Both the position numbers and the translations under genes were made by a program. Below, piece after piece: positions 27,191-53,538 of a DNA stretch of 64,000 bases. Numbering within the stretch: position 1 is the stretch's first letter; every line of letters starts with the position of its first letter. Origin of the DNA: Macrostomum lignano (Eukaryota); NCBI GenBank assembly GCA_002269645.1, contig NIVC01000464.1, positions 62,001 to 126,000 of the forward strand, written 5' to 3'. The notes below the pieces were generated by a model. The model was not told the DNA's origin. It saw nothing but the letters and a program-made list of their open reading frames with translations, and searched no databases.

Positions 27191-28887
27191 TCAAACTCGC
27201 TGGTAGACCCGGATGTAATCCACCTGCATAGCCGTCTGGTCGTTGCCCACTCCGCCCCAGGTTCGCTCCCAGACGCCGCGTTTCTCCCAGAATTCGCGCA
27301 TCTGAGTTGGCGATCCCTTCGCCCACGGCTTGGCACCGTTGGCTCCGTTGCTGCAGCCGTCCGGGAAGAAGTCGCCACCGATGGCCACGTTCAGGATGAG
27401 ATGGAACGGCTGGTCGAATGGCGCCATCCGGTTGCCGCCGGCCCACAGGTTGTTGCCCTGGAAGTTGCCGAGCTTCCAGAAGCCGCCAGCGTCTGGCCGG
27501 ATCGCTCCGATGAACACGTCGTCAACCTTGTAGGCGATGTAGCTGTCTGACCACTCCAGCTCGTACTTGTGGAAGGACTCCGTGTAGGGGTTGGAATAGT
27601 CGTCCTTTGTCCAGGCGGTCAGATCCCAGCGGTTCTGACCCGGGTGAGGTCCCCAGTGCAAAGTGGATCCCATGTGCTTGTTGCCGATGTGCTTGTTGCC
27701 GCAGCTGAAATCGGTGTTGCCGCGAATCTCCACCAGGTCGATCTCGCCAGACATTGGCCAGCCGCCGTATTTCCAGTCTGTCGGCAGCATCCAGATGGCT
27801 GGCCACAGCCAGTCACCCTTGGGCATCTTGGCCGACACCTCCAGACGACCGTAGCGGAAGGAGAAAGACTGGGAGGTGTGCATCCTGGCTGACTGCATTG
27901 GATTCAGGATGTCCACGCCAGCGGAGATCATGCAGCCGCCGTCGATGTTCATATCGGGCTGGCAGCCCTGCTCCCAGAGGTTAAGACTGCCTGAAATGTG
28001 CGTTTTTTTAAAGCAAGCTCAGTTCCCTTATTTGGTTGTTTACACGTGTTCGTGGTGCGGCATGTTCTAACCGCCAAGGTCTTCTATAGGTTTTTCTGGT
28101 CAAGTAGACTGGTATCATGACCGATACATGACATGATGACTGATCCGCACCCTTGTGTTCGTTATACCTGTGCAGAAAAGATTTATACATGGAAACGAAC
28201 GACTCTGCTACTTAAAATGCTCTTGACTTGGTCTTTTGGTTTTGGATGCAGGAGTAGGTTACGCAACGGTCTCAGCACTGTACAAGCTGTATGCTCGTAC
28301 GCAGGGGCTTGATAGTCTCATACACTTGGCTACCTTGCTGGATCAGTGGATTAACCAAAAAGAGAAGCCTTCTCACCTCTATAAAGAAAGTCGTTGCCGT
28401 ACTCGCTAGCCGTGGACGATGGCTTGATGTAGAGCTTGCCATTTCGTACGTAGCTATTCTTGCGACTGTTTCTGTAGTACTGGAACTCGTGGTTACCGCC
28501 GCGCCAGCCGGTGACGAGGTGCTGCCAACGGCGCTCGTCTAGAGTGTTGAAGTCCTCCTGAAAGATGAGCTTCTCGTTGACGGCACAATTGGCCGGGCCG
28601 GCGATCCGGTAGCGATTGTTCTCCGGCTTGCTGTTGCCGCTCTTTAGCCAGCAGGTGAGGCGGCACTGCGGACAGTTCTGGTCAGTTGGCGGCGACCAGG
28701 AGAAGAACCTGCAGCCGGGCCTGAGCTGGCAGTGTCGCTGACAGGCCTCGGCCGAGGCCACTCCAGTGATGGTGCCGGAGTTCAAGTCGTCGCCGGTGTA
28801 GTCGAGTCCGTACTCGAGACAGACCCGATGGCCTTCGGCAGCTCCGAAGGCGACTAGAGCTAGAATAGCTAGGATGCGAGCTGGCAT
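27191..28887 (-). CDS. Secreted PAN/apple-domain + GH16 beta-1,3-glucanase (laminarinase/LGBP family), 436 aa
   Basis: Exon 1 is 28887-28377 (ATG, signal peptide MPARILAILALVAFGAAEG, 8-Cys apple domain, start of GH16: GWRGGNHEFQYY). Phase-1 GT-AG intron 28376-27991. Exon 2 is 27990-27191 with FRYGRLEVSAKMPKGDWLWPAIWMLP, the catalytic motif WPMSGEIDLVE (E-I-D-x-x-E intact), MAPFDQPFHLILNVAIGG and VDYIRVYQ. Confidence 0.95.
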
Positions 28888-28939
28888 GGTTCTGCTGTTG
28901 CTGCCGAATACAGCAGTCCGTGCCGGATTGTGGCTTACC

Positions 28940-28945
28940 TTTATA
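28940..28945 (-). promoter_or_regulatory. TATA box of the PAN-GH16 gene
   Basis: TATAAA on the minus strand, 53 nt upstream of the ATG. Confidence 0.55.
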
Positions 28946-29551
28946 CCTTTTCTCAGGGTCGGCAGGTGGGGTTGGAGGGCAAAGTTTGAGTAAGACGTTG
29001 CTCCGACGCAATTGATAAGCAGGTGGTTCTCGCAGGTTGTTTTTTCCCAGGTGTCAGGGCGGACGGTTTTTGGTAATAATCTCACGTTGTAAAATAAATA
29101 CTGCATTGCATTGCATGCATGCCCTGATTTGCCAATCGCCCAGCTATGGGGCCACTCGGTTCGGTTAGCAAGCACCTGAAGTGAGTACTCTGCCATTGCT
29201 TAGCGGTGTTTTCCTTTGTTCAGTCCTAGATTAGCTTGGGAAAATTTTTGTATCGGAGGGGTGTGCTGCAAGGGCAGTCTTATCTGTGCCGTTTGAAATA
29301 TGGCCTGCTATTGCGTTTTCCAGAAAATATCTTTTAAAAATGGGCGTGTATTACTGGGTGTGTATTGCGACTGGGCGTGTACTACTGCACTTTTTCTACA
29401 ACCTTAACCGAGATTTGTTAACGAAAAAACCCAGAAAATCTTTGAAGAGAAATCACGCGATCCAGTCTTGTTTGCGAATTTCTGTAAAATTTTAGTGCAG
29501 AAGCATCTCATTCGTTTAATCTTAGGTAAAAAGCTCTGCAATTAGTTAGTT

Positions 29552-30190
29552 AGTACTACTACTGCTGCTAATACTAATACTACTATTACTACTACTATCG
29601 CTGCCAGACTAATACTACTACCACTACTACTAATACTACTGCTAATACTAATACTACTACTACTAATACTACTACTACTACTACTACTACTACTAATACT
29701 ACTGCTAATACTAATACTACTACTACTAATACTACTACTACTACTACTACTACTACTAATACTACTGCTAATACTAATACTACTACTACTAATACTACTA
29801 CTACTACTACTACTACTACTAATACTACTGCTAATACTAATACTACTACTACTAATACTACTACTACTACTAATACTACTACTACTACTACTACTACTAA
29901 TACTACTACTACTACTACCACTACTACTAATACTACTGCTAATACTAATACTACTACTACTAATACTACTACTACTACTACCACTACTACTAATACTACT
30001 GCTAATACTAATACTACTACTACTACTGCTACTAATACTACTACTACTACTACTACTACTACTACTACCACTACTACTACTACCACTACTACTACTACTA
30101 CTACTACTACTACTACTACCACTACTACTACTACTACTACTACTACTACTACTACTACTACTACTACTACTACTACTACTACTACTACTG
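29552..30190. repeat. (ACT/AAT)n trinucleotide microsatellite
   Basis: Long tactac/taatac run. It is the source of the poly-Ser and poly-Val ORFs. Confidence 0.97.
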
Positions 30191-52320: not shown

Positions 52321-52654
52321 AAGAAGATGGAAGTTTCAAAGGATGCAAAAGGACATAGGGAGAGGCAGAGGTAGAGGCCAGAGTTTGCCTGACATTCTGC
52401 GCAGCACCCCAGCCAACAATATCAATGTTTGCCTCAAATCGTAATTTTACATGAATGTACACTATTTTATGTTAAACTCTATCCTAACTATTAACAAGTT
52501 TTTATTTGAGTTTGACTTCAGATTTTAGAATACATGCAAAAATAATTCTGGGGAATGGAGTTCCCCGGGTTCAAAATCCGCGGGTTTCAACAGCTTGTAA
52601 ATTATATAATTCAATGCACGCTGCTTGTACGTGTAACTATATGCCGAGTGGGAC

Positions 52655-52662
52655 TATAAATA
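52655..52662 (+). promoter_or_regulatory. TATA box of triple-PAN gene 2
   Basis: TATAAATA 58 nt upstream of the ATG at 52720, essentially the same spacing as in copy 1. Confidence 0.65.
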
Positions 52663-52719
52663 CAGAGCTTGAAAGATTCAAACAGCTTGCAAGATCACCC
52701 AGTTAAAGATAGCCAAAAT

Positions 52720-53538
52720 ATGAACTCATTTTTGAGAAGCGGAGCGTCCGTGCGGTCTGCACTACTACTATTAGTAGTTGCACTGGCAGCTCCACTGGCC
52801 GCTTCGGCCTCTTCCTGCAGGGTCGCTGATGTCGAGTTCAAAGGCGAGGAGTTGCCTTTCGGAAGACTGATGGCTGGCAGTGCTGCGGAGTGCCAGCTCA
52901 AATGCCGGTCAATCAGCCGCTGCAAGTTCTACACTTTTACACCTGACAAAGAGCGGTCGAGTTGGAGTTTGTGCTCGATCAGGTCCGGCGACTACACGGC
53001 TACTTACAAGAAGAATTCGATCTCGGGACTACCGAATTGTCCTGGCACCTGCATTGAGGCTGGCGTGGACTACTACGGCTCTGACCTGCCGGACGGTCTC
53101 GTGAAGGACGTGCCCAGTTCTGACGTCTGCCAGAAGCTGTGCCAGCAGCGGATCGACTGCGAATTCTTTGCTTACGCCACACAAAGCGACTCGAACTGCC
53201 GGCGCTGCTACCGCAACTGCTGGCTGAAGTCTGGCGGCTACAGCCGCACTGAGAACAGAAACCGGATCTCTGGACCAGCCCGCTGCAAGGACTGCGTTGA
53301 GACTGGCGTGGACTACTACGGCTCTGACTTGCCCGACGGTCTCGTGAAGGACATCGCCAGCGCCAAGGACTGCCAGTCGCTGTGCGCCAATCGCAAGGAC
53401 TGCCAGTTCTTCACCTGGGCTCCCGACAATGACAAGGGGTGCCAAACCTGCAGGGGCAACTGCTGGCTGAAGTCTGGCAACTACCGACGGGTCGTCAATT
53501 CCAACAGAGTCTCCGGGCCCGCCGTTTGCAACTTTTGA
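52720..53538 (+). CDS. Secreted triple PAN/apple-domain protein, copy 2 (272 aa, intronless)
   Basis: Signal peptide MNSFLRSGASVRSALLLLVVALAAPLAASA. The mature part is identical to copy 1 except for one I>V change. Confidence 0.9.
   Translation: MNSFLRSGASVRSALLLLVVALAAPLAASASSCRVADVEFKGEELPFGRLMAGSAAECQLKCRSISRCKFYTFTPDKERSSWSLCSIRSGDYTATYKKNSISGLPNCPGTCIEAGVDYYGSDLPDGLVKDVPSSDVCQKLCQQRIDCEFFAYATQSDSNCRRCYRNCWLKSGGYSRTENRNRISGPARCKDCVETGVDYYGSDLPDGLVKDIASAKDCQSLCANRKDCQFFTWAPDNDKGCQTCRGNCWLKSGNYRRVVNSNRVSGPAVCNF

Follow-up and report, generated by a model that had tools for sequence, protein, structure and literature searches.

An apple-bearing GH16 gene and two triple-apple genes that share an eight-cysteine module in Macrostomum lignano

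Within a 64,000-nucleotide window of the Macrostomum lignano genome (assembly GCA_002269645.1, contig NIVC01000464.1, forward-strand positions 62,001 to 126,000; coordinates below are positions in this window), one variant of the apple (PAN) domain is carried both by a predicted secreted GH16 enzyme and by two predicted secreted triple-apple proteins without an enzyme domain, triA and triB (Table 1). The joint reading to which we give slightly better than even chances is that of a secreted laminarinase digesting diatom glucan, fitted with an apple targeting module and accompanied by triple-apple paralogues that act as multivalent binders.

Table 1. Features of the apple-GH16 and triple-apple genes and of the sequence between them.
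Feature	Positions	Strand	Remarks
Apple-GH16 gene Mlig024988	27191..28887	-	2 exons, 436 aa; frame-checked splice and match to M. lignano GH16 proteins
Apple-GH16 exon 2	27191-27990	-	frame-checked splice
Catalytic motif E-I-D-L-V-E, GH16 domain	27728..27745	-	SGEIDLVE aligned to SGEIDIME of 7wwc
Apple-GH16 intron	27991-28376	-	386 nt, GT..AG, phase 1
Apple-GH16 exon 1	28377-28887	-	frame-checked splice
8-Cys apple/PAN of GH16 protein	28582..28824	-	residues 22-102; extra CPQC in hairpin loop
Predicted signal peptide MPARILAILALVAFGAAEG of GH16 protein	28831..28887	-	hydrophobic core then small residues; read from sequence
TATAAA of GH16 gene	28940..28945	-	first T 58 nt before ATG
SpoU methylase gene	29146-32145		domain-bearing ORF on + at 31579-32145; unrelated, between GH16 and triA
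Methyltransf_16 ORFs	33153-34379	+	unrelated, between GH16 and triA
TATAAATA box of triA	36843..36850	+	first T at -66
Triple-apple gene A (triA)	36909..37748	+	intronless, 279 aa, predicted signal peptide and 3 apples
triA predicted signal peptide	36909-37019	+	hydrophobic N-terminus
triA apple 1	37023-37253	+	6 Cys
triA apple 2	37257-37499	+	8 Cys
triA apple 3	37500-37742	+	8 Cys
Two AATAAA signals of triA	37831..37869	+	83 and 116 nt past triA stop
TATAAATA box of triB	52655..52662	+	first T at -65
Triple-apple gene B (triB)	52720..53538	+	intronless, 272 aa, signal peptide differs from that of triA
triB apple 1	52813-53043	+
triB apple 2	53047-53289	+
triB apple 3	53290-53532	+

The apple-GH16 gene and its predicted enzyme

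The 436-aa product of the apple-GH16 gene agrees over its full length, at 99.7% identity or more, with the UniProt/NCBI models for M. lignano (P0126 is likewise 436 aa). Pfam matches and a reading of the sequence give the domain order signal peptide, one PAN/apple, GH16, with a gap of 4 residues between apple and catalytic domain; the intact E-I-D-x-x-E motif of the original prediction is present as EIDLVE. The catalytic domain scores 46.2 bits against Glyco_hydro_16 (PF00722; cut-off 22), PDB laminarinases match the protein at E 1e-22 to 1e-12, and its motif aligns without loss to that of 7wwc, a solved beta-1,3(4)-glucanase. The closest relatives are metazoan beta-1,3-glucanases and glucan-binding proteins, with arthropod, Daphnia and deuterostome members at 44-59% identity; a neighbour-joining tree groups the protein with animal and unnamed aquatic sequences, and the CAZy subfamily expected for this metazoan clade is GH16_4. 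We found three genomic copies of the gene (g1-g3), all intact, which differ by 0.1-0.6% in the CDS versus 2-3% in the 5' flank. We reject contamination or horizontal transfer on account of the intron, the three homeologous copies among animal genes, and the metazoan relatives.

The gene would encode an endo-beta-1,3-glucanase that belongs to the metazoan GH16 clade, is secreted and is competent for catalysis; for an animal kept on diatoms, there are good grounds to read its product as a putative secreted laminarinase of catalytic type. With the diatom Nitzschia curvilineata as the culture food of M. lignano (PMC10024726), a role in digesting chrysolaminarin is sensible. The animal most probably uses the enzyme to digest beta-1,3-glucan from its diatom food. 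Digestion is not the sole option, since in other invertebrates GH16 enzymes of this clade have immune functions as well.

In an immune reading, which seems to us unlikely though it draws on real likenesses, the apple-GH16 protein would be an LGBP-like sensor of fungal or bacterial beta-glucan or an enzyme that lyses it, and agglutination or opsonisation would fall to the triple-apple proteins. The nearest named homologues are annotated as beta-1,3-glucan-binding protein or GNBP, and multivalent lectins are typical agglutinins. Metazoan GH16 laminarinases and the LGBP/GNBP/beta-GRP proteins share with the M. lignano protein the GH16 fold family, the E-x-D-x-x-E motif and the signal peptide, and LGBPs and GNBPs share its general plan, with a binder at the N-terminus and GH16 after it. 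The N-terminal module itself differs, being PAN/apple in M. lignano, whereas the metazoan relatives have CBM39 or nothing: PF15886 stands beside PF00722 in homologues P0057, P0075, P0076 and P0085, Pfam gives no match to CBM39 (PF15886) in the M. lignano GH16 protein, and the apple takes the CBM39 position. Three of these homologues (P0057, P0076 and P0085) exemplify the binder-plus-GH16 layout that counts towards an immune role, as in animal GNBPs and LGBPs (PMC12645860, PMC13414360). Against such a role stand not only the missing CBM39 but also a food rich in beta-1,3-glucan and the intact catalytic residues of the M. lignano protein. Insect recognition-type beta-GRPs lack these residues.

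A shared apple module with two additional cysteines

The apple of the GH16 protein is a well-supported member of the PAN family, scoring 32.3 bits against PAN_4 (cut-off 27) and 27.4 against PAN_1 (cut-off 21.4) in Pfam. It had been proposed to match apples 2 and 3 of the triple-apple proteins, and does so without gaps, at 37/81 and 38/81 identities (tblastn E 1e-19 to 1e-21). Identity to apple 1, which has six cysteines, is only 25%. The additional CxxC pair that had also been noticed beyond the usual six cysteines is real, and sits in a variable-length hairpin loop between the FFxW strand and CWLK. In an alignment of 46 apples (A6), six cysteine columns are invariant and the two extra cysteines occur only in M. 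lignano sequences; the apples were misaligned when their segments were put into one alignment with full-length GH16 homologues, which was discarded. Of 1.84 billion proteins searched with a profile, 2492 matched, and the CxxC is missing from all of the best 150; the best foreign apple scores 64 bits versus 152 for the module itself. The module is common specifically to the enzyme and the triple-apple proteins, and their genes are related by descent.

The triple-apple proteins bear out the claim of two signal peptide-apple x3 genes, with three PAN stretches in each (PAN_4 E ~1e-24, 86 bits over the three stretches); both have a hydrophobic N-terminus that ends in ASA ahead of SSC. Their GC3 of 0.75 (versus ~0.45 for regional GC), the dN/dS of 0.4-0.5 between their apples, a TATA box and a predicted signal peptide make these ORFs look like genuine coding sequence. 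The public protein collection searched, with its NCBI and UniProt proteins of M. lignano, contains neither of the two. A word-indexed homologue search returned one match with the triple-apple protein and none with the apple alignment, and local phmmer at equal database size gave many strong matches; the word index is insensitive for this domain, and its result therefore excludes no more than a near-identical recorded protein.

The predicted fold of the GH16 apple is of high quality (AF2 pLDDT 94, pTM 0.84); a single-sequence AlphaFold model of the triB protein was unusable (pLDDT 39). The apples of prekallikrein and factor XI are the top matches in the PDB by both sequence and structure (Foldseek probability 1.00, TM 0.76-0.78), and have the same six-cysteine framework, the CxLK and SGxxxC motifs, and tandem apple arrays. 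The flatworm apple differs from these in that its hairpin loop has the additional CxxC pair. The prekallikrein and factor XI apples sit on a serine protease, which the M. lignano proteins lack, and bind proteins (kininogen, factor IX).

Locus organization, promoters and gene conversion

The three genes had been described as a gene cluster, but they are not contiguous: two unrelated methyltransferase genes separate GH16 from triA, ~15 kb of repeats separate triA from triB, and triB abuts a satellite array. Among the homeologous loci, with 10-kb flanks examined, L001 and L003 have a triple-apple gene ~8 kb from GH16, and L002 has unrelated sequence at the expected triA position and no triple-apple gene within its flank. 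Local duplication explains the proximity of the GH16 and triple-apple genes well enough. We note in passing that the Methyltransf_16 gene is missing from the deposited annotation, which is visibly incomplete here, and that Rfam and tRNA scans of the window found nothing.

All three genes have a TATA box upstream, as had been stated, and the position given for them (53-59 nt before the ATG) holds for the GH16 gene and is off by ~6 nt for triA and triB. At a background of 0.41 TATAAA per kb per strand, the chance of such a box within a 16-nt span is ~0.0065 per gene.

The two triple-apple genes are nearly identical over a sharply bounded segment. Positions 37010..37759 (+), 750 bp comprising the mature-peptide coding region plus 11 nt, are 99.7% identical to 52800-53549, with 737 of 738 CDS positions identical; beyond this segment the 5' flanks are unrelated and the 3' flanks are 63% identical over 119 nt. 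The identity is confined to the mature-peptide region, with different promoters and signal peptides on either copy, which is the signature of gene conversion. A splice or trans-splice acceptor at the 5' edge of the identity (...CCTCTTCCTGCAG) is disfavoured; each copy has its own in-frame ATG, signal peptide and upstream TATA box, which is the simpler reading. The triple-apple genes are enzyme-free paralogues of the GH16 apple, with products predicted to be secreted, and would have arisen by local duplication or domain transfer, with gene conversion probably keeping the mature-peptide regions of triA and triB near-identical.

It is very unlikely, in our estimation, that the triple-apple ORFs are silent or decaying recent duplicates, left unexpressed beside a GH16 gene that alone is functional. 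Their absence from the protein collection would fit such a fate, as would the satellite array next to triB, the lack of AATAAA or ATTAAA within 400 nt downstream of triB, and the homeologous locus with no triple-apple gene within reach. Yet there are three intact copies (triA, triB and one at L003), every cysteine is kept, there are a TATA box, a signal peptide, a GC3 of 0.75 and a dN/dS below 1, and the deposited annotation, visibly incomplete at this locus, misses the Methyltransf_16 gene too.

Candidate ligands of the apple and parallels elsewhere

Within the favoured reading of a digestive laminarinase with companion binders, the apple is most likely a non-catalytic targeting module that would hold the enzyme on a ligand, which might be a glycan from food or microbes, or else a glycoprotein on the gut surface; in that case the triple-apple proteins would bind this ligand, or a related one, multivalently, and the three gene products might cooperate. 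Precedent for glycan binding by PAN domains exists. Secreted, enzyme-free, multi-PAN proteins resembling the triple-apple products include Sarcocystis muris SML-2, Toxoplasma MIC4, Eimeria MIC5 and oomycete CBEL, which act in host-cell or cell-wall adhesion and are 20-25% identical to the M. lignano apple. MIC4 and MIC5 match the apple in sequence, and the galactose lectin SML-2, solved in complex with thio-galactose, matches its model in structure (TM 0.70, 25% identity), slightly below the kallikrein and factor XI apples. Heparin is a glycan ligand of PAN in solved HGF NK1 complexes. The original prediction had cited CBEL and apicomplexan proteins as cases of PAN-glycan binding; this holds for the apicomplexan lectins, but the PAN specificities found are galactose/GalNAc and chondroitin sulfate, not beta-glucan, and cellulose binding by CBEL resides in its CBM1 (PMC3532174).

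A more specific proposal strikes us as distinctly unlikely: that the 8-Cys CxxC apple is a carbohydrate-binding module of a new, PAN type, directed at beta-1,3-glucan or diatom surface glycans, and that the flatworm deploys it both on the laminarinase and in secreted trivalent lectins by which diatom material is captured or aggregated in the blind gut. If true, an animal would combine enzyme and lectins into a toolkit for algal glucan, and PAN plus GH16 would be a solution reached repeatedly in other lineages, possibly including bacteria.

The apples might instead bind proteins, serving in oligomerisation, in anchoring to gut mucus or matrix, or in attachment to a protease or other partner; the triple-apple function would then be unrelated to beta-glucan (matrix, secretion granule, reproductive) and the linkage a by-product of local copying. 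The best structural matches, the kallikrein and factor XI apples, bind kininogen peptides; proteins built of several apples and nothing else are very common among eukaryotes; unrelated genes are interspersed in the locus; and, with 10-kb flanks examined, only two of the three homeologous loci show the linkage. We nevertheless consider this improbable, with SML-2 structurally almost as close, the apple in the position of CBM39, and PAN joined to GH16 in several separate lineages, one probably bacterial, which suggests a substrate-related benefit.

That last point bears on how unusual the architecture is. Among the 120 best GH16 homologue clusters, just 3 carry PAN, and at least three further uncharacterised lineages have PAN+GH16 (P0005, P0047 and P0283, the last probably bacterial), none with a protein name in the collections searched; P0047 and P0283 fall elsewhere in the GH16 tree than the M. 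lignano protein. PAN is joined to other enzymes too, as in hydrolase P0149 and the fungal (Colletotrichum) copper radical oxidase 6ryv. P0005, P0047, P0283 and 6ryv resemble the M. lignano protein in having PAN N-terminal on a secreted enzyme, and differ from it in that they have two or three PANs, whose cysteines are patterned otherwise and do not include the CxxC. The suggestion that this fusion with companion lectins is undescribed in animals thus stands in that no description of an apple-GH16 plus triple-apple architecture, and no mention of the gene Mlig024988, was found in the literature searched, and falls short in that PAN+GH16 is rare yet not unique to M. lignano.

The locus overturns no current understanding and is a well-defined, testable case. 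Independently of function, it adds two intact secreted-protein genes missing from the public protein collection searched, a single domain variant common to an enzyme and neighbouring binder genes, and a conversion limited to the mature-peptide region between genes with distinct promoters and signal peptides. Should the apple prove to bind glycan, the ancillary modules known from glycoside hydrolases would gain a PAN-type member, and the locus would offer a molecular handle on the digestion of diatom storage glucan in a small, genetically tractable flatworm for which RNAi and transgenesis exist (PMC11075559, PMC5730564).

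The apple-GH16 gene and its product

Over positions 17191-38977 the window matches Mlig_3_7 contig NIVC01000464.1 at 100% identity, and the spliced GH16 protein matches proteins of M. lignano, a free-living flatworm, in UniProt and NCBI. The gene, Mlig024988, occurs in three near-identical genomic copies (loci L001 to L003), consistent with how redundant this assembly is and with the additional chromosomes in the sequenced line (PMC5730564). All three copies are intact, and they diverge by 0.1-0.6% in the coding sequence versus 2-3% in the 5' flank.

The encoded protein opens with a hydrophobic leader, MPARILAILALVAFGAAEG, followed by an 81-residue PAN/apple domain that exceeds the cut-offs of both Pfam PAN_4 and PAN_1; the GH16 domain (PF00722, 46 bits) begins just four residues past the apple and carries an intact EIDLVE catalytic motif, which can be aligned with solved laminarinases. 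Its 120 best homologues (44-59% identity) comprise metazoan proteins of the beta-1,3-glucanase or glucan-binding type together with unnamed aquatic metatranscriptome sequences. We prefer the 436-aa gene model (see table) over a longer, 509-aa database model, because the TATAAA box, which starts 58 nt upstream of the ATG, falls within the longer model and because the shorter one has an N-terminal signal peptide.

In culture, M. lignano feeds on the diatom Nitzschia curvilineata (PMC10024726). The storage glucan of this diatom is a beta-1,3-glucan, and with this diet and this storage compound the enzyme is most economically read as a digestive laminarinase. The GH16 protein is probably secreted and active as a beta-1,3-glucanase, in an animal that eats diatoms.

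Coordinates of genes, shared segments, and repeats
Feature	Position	Strand	Details
GH16 gene	exon 1 28887-28377, exon 2 27990-27191	minus	386-nt GT..AG intron, phase 1; 436 aa
Triple-apple gene A	36909-37748	plus	ORF, 279 aa
Triple-apple gene B	52720-53538	plus	ORF, 272 aa
Segment shared by genes A and B	37010-37759 vs 52800-53549		sequence comparison
Apple 2/apple 3 patch	37259-37319 vs 37502-37562		61 bp
Methyltransf_16 ORFs	33153-34379	plus	two ORFs
TAC-based array	29554-30193		period 6 and 63; about 107 hexamer copies
18-bp satellite	53853-55059		TGCTTGCTATCTGGGGGA; about 68 copies
Inverted array	4603-5130		about 90% identical to the 18-bp satellite
Tandem arrays	5223-8622; 25365-26219; 57603-58271; 19174-19893		3.4-kb satellite, 29-bp array, 28-bp arrays
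Purine-rich region	44000-52300		(GAGGAGA)n-like; GC skew up to +0.6
Segmentally repeated units	40.4-43.9 kb and 45.2-47.9 kb		related to each other
1.1-kb dispersed repeat	10676-11817 vs 49430-50575		87% identity
Cyclic-nucleotide-binding ORF	59006-59554	plus	PF00027, E 3e-18

An apple variant common to the enzyme and two enzyme-free neighbours

One apple variant is common to the enzyme and to the products of two enzyme-free neighbours, the triple-apple genes A and B, each of which consists of a leader ending in ASA and three PAN domains, with nothing further. The GH16 apple and apples 2 and 3 each have exactly 81 residues and align without gaps; 37-38 of the 81 positions are identical between the GH16 apple and apple 2 or 3, and 50 of 81 between apples 2 and 3 (tblastn E values for the apple matches, 1e-19 to 1e-21). 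Apple 1 is a divergent, six-cysteine domain with 25% identity.

Searching an apple profile against 1.84 billion representative proteins returned 2492 hits. Among the best 150 of these, the top foreign apple scored 64 bits versus 152 bits for the M. lignano apple, the pattern C-x2-C-x(2-4)-C-x-[LIVM]-[KR] was not found, and none of the best foreign apples spanning the whole domain was found to carry the CxxC pair. None of the six canonical cysteines varies across an alignment of 46 apple sequences, in which CxxC lies in a variable-length loop preceding CWLK; an AlphaFold model of the apple from this alignment is confident (pLDDT 94). The eight-cysteine apple of the original prediction is accordingly a real variant, with a CxxC pair seen in the GH16 apple and in apples 2 and 3 and not in the best 150 of the 2492 profile hits, and, judged on those same 150, it appears to be lineage-restricted.

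The triple-apple genes and the history of the locus

In both triple-apple genes, TATAAATA lies 65-66 nt upstream of the first ATG. A TATA box 53-59 nt before the ATG had been proposed for all three genes; the GH16 box fits this range, and the triple-apple distances call for a small correction. GC3 is 0.75 in the triple-apple genes and 0.79 in the GH16 gene, with a regional GC of only about 0.45, and comparison of apple with apple gives a dN/dS of 0.4-0.5. Two AATAAA signals follow the stop codon of gene A; no such signal was found within 400 nt downstream of gene B. Directly downstream of gene B lies the 18-bp satellite, and the related inverted array is located close to the beginning of the window.

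Neither triple-apple protein was found in the public protein collection searched. This absence is weak evidence against expression, since the deposited annotation of NIVC01000464.1 also misses a clear Methyltransf_16 gene, which was not found among its called genes. The two ORFs concerned match the N- and C-terminal halves of the Methyltransf_16 lysine methyltransferase profile and are evidently exons of one gene.

Genes A and B are 99.7% identical across exactly 750 bp, comprising the region coding for the mature peptide plus 11 nt, with a single difference in 738 nt of coding sequence. No similarity between their promoters or signal peptides could be detected, and in the 3' flank 63% identity is left, over 119 nt only. 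Identity confined to the mature-peptide coding region between diverged flanks is a signature of gene conversion between old duplicates; the pattern looks like such conversion homogenising the coding cores, or like capture of a new 5' end. Within a single gene, apples 2 and 3 share a patch that is 95% identical and encodes GVDYYGSDLPDGLVKD, with much greater divergence outside it, which suggests intragenic conversion. Among the homeologous loci, L003 has a triple-apple gene at the same distance from GH16, and L002 (1-2640, contig NIVC01001374.1) shows no similarity to the window at the expected triple-apple position, a difference that could reflect presence/absence between homeologues or an insertion.

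All three genes are indeed present at the locus, as proposed, but the cluster is not contiguous: a SpoU methylase gene and the lysine-methyltransferase-like gene intervene between GH16 and gene A, and gene A is separated from gene B by about 15 kb of satellite and dispersed-repeat sequence, in which no convincing genes were found. Local duplication or domain transfer accounts fully for the proximity of the three genes. On its own, this proximity says little about joint function.

The tandem arrays of the window (see table) agree with the high tandem-repeat content reported for the M. lignano genome; the array at 57.6 kb is related to that at 19.2 kb, and the TAC-based array, within the annotated SpoU methylase span, yields long poly-Ser and poly-Val pseudo-ORFs. 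The 1.1-kb dispersed repeat is probably a transposable-element fragment, and the cyclic-nucleotide-binding ORF, downstream of the apple loci, probably represents a single exon of some larger gene.

PAN-GH16 fusions and possible ligands of the apple

The fusion of PAN with GH16 is rare and uncharacterised. Across the 120 best GH16 homologue clusters it occurs only in the M. lignano cluster and in two proteins with two PANs each, P0005, which derives from marine metatranscriptomes, a Tara Oceans run among them, and P0047. A further protein, P0283, joins three PANs to a bacterial-type GH16 domain; it is probably prokaryotic, given its gene-dense contig with EF-G and aspartate-semialdehyde dehydrogenase genes as neighbours. 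In a neighbour-joining tree P0005 shares the M. lignano clade, among members without PAN, and P0047 groups with proteins of deuterostomes and lophotrochozoans, some of which have CBM39 (several cases). The PANs of these other fusions differ in the arrangement of their cysteines and match the M. lignano apple profile only at low scores. The fusion probably had more than one origin, and its repetition lends indirect support to a substrate-related role. The closest foreign apples belong to an environmental protein, P0149, in which a calcineurin-like phosphoesterase domain, three PANs, and an endonuclease/exonuclease/phosphatase domain occur together; it is a further case of this type of apple on secreted hydrolases, and a fungal copper radical oxidase (6ryv) likewise bears this kind of apple.

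The top structural matches of the apple model are the apples of plasma kallikrein and factor XI (TM 0.76-0.78), which are protein-binding, followed by SML-2, a galactose-binding lectin of Sarcocystis (TM 0.70), and then by the microneme PANs of Eimeria and Toxoplasma and the heparin-binding HGF N domain; heparin is bound in solved HGF NK1 complexes. Beyond heparin, the glycans that we found reported as PAN ligands are Gal/GalNAc and chondroitin sulfate (PMC3532174); a PAN that binds beta-glucan did not turn up in the literature. The best positional argument for the apple as a binding module comes from related animal proteins, in which CBM39 takes the place that the apple holds in the M. lignano GH16 protein. 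The apple is possibly a carbohydrate-binding module; candidate ligands are beta-glucan, a glycan on the diatom surface, and a glycoprotein of the gut surface that would keep the enzyme in place. A beta-glucan system comprising the GH16 gene and the two triple-apple genes is speculative. The observation behind the original prediction is confirmed with small corrections, and its interpretation is partly supported. GH16 laminarinases and multi-PAN secreted proteins are kinds already known, and the locus is a variant of both, in a tractable animal in which clear experiments are possible.
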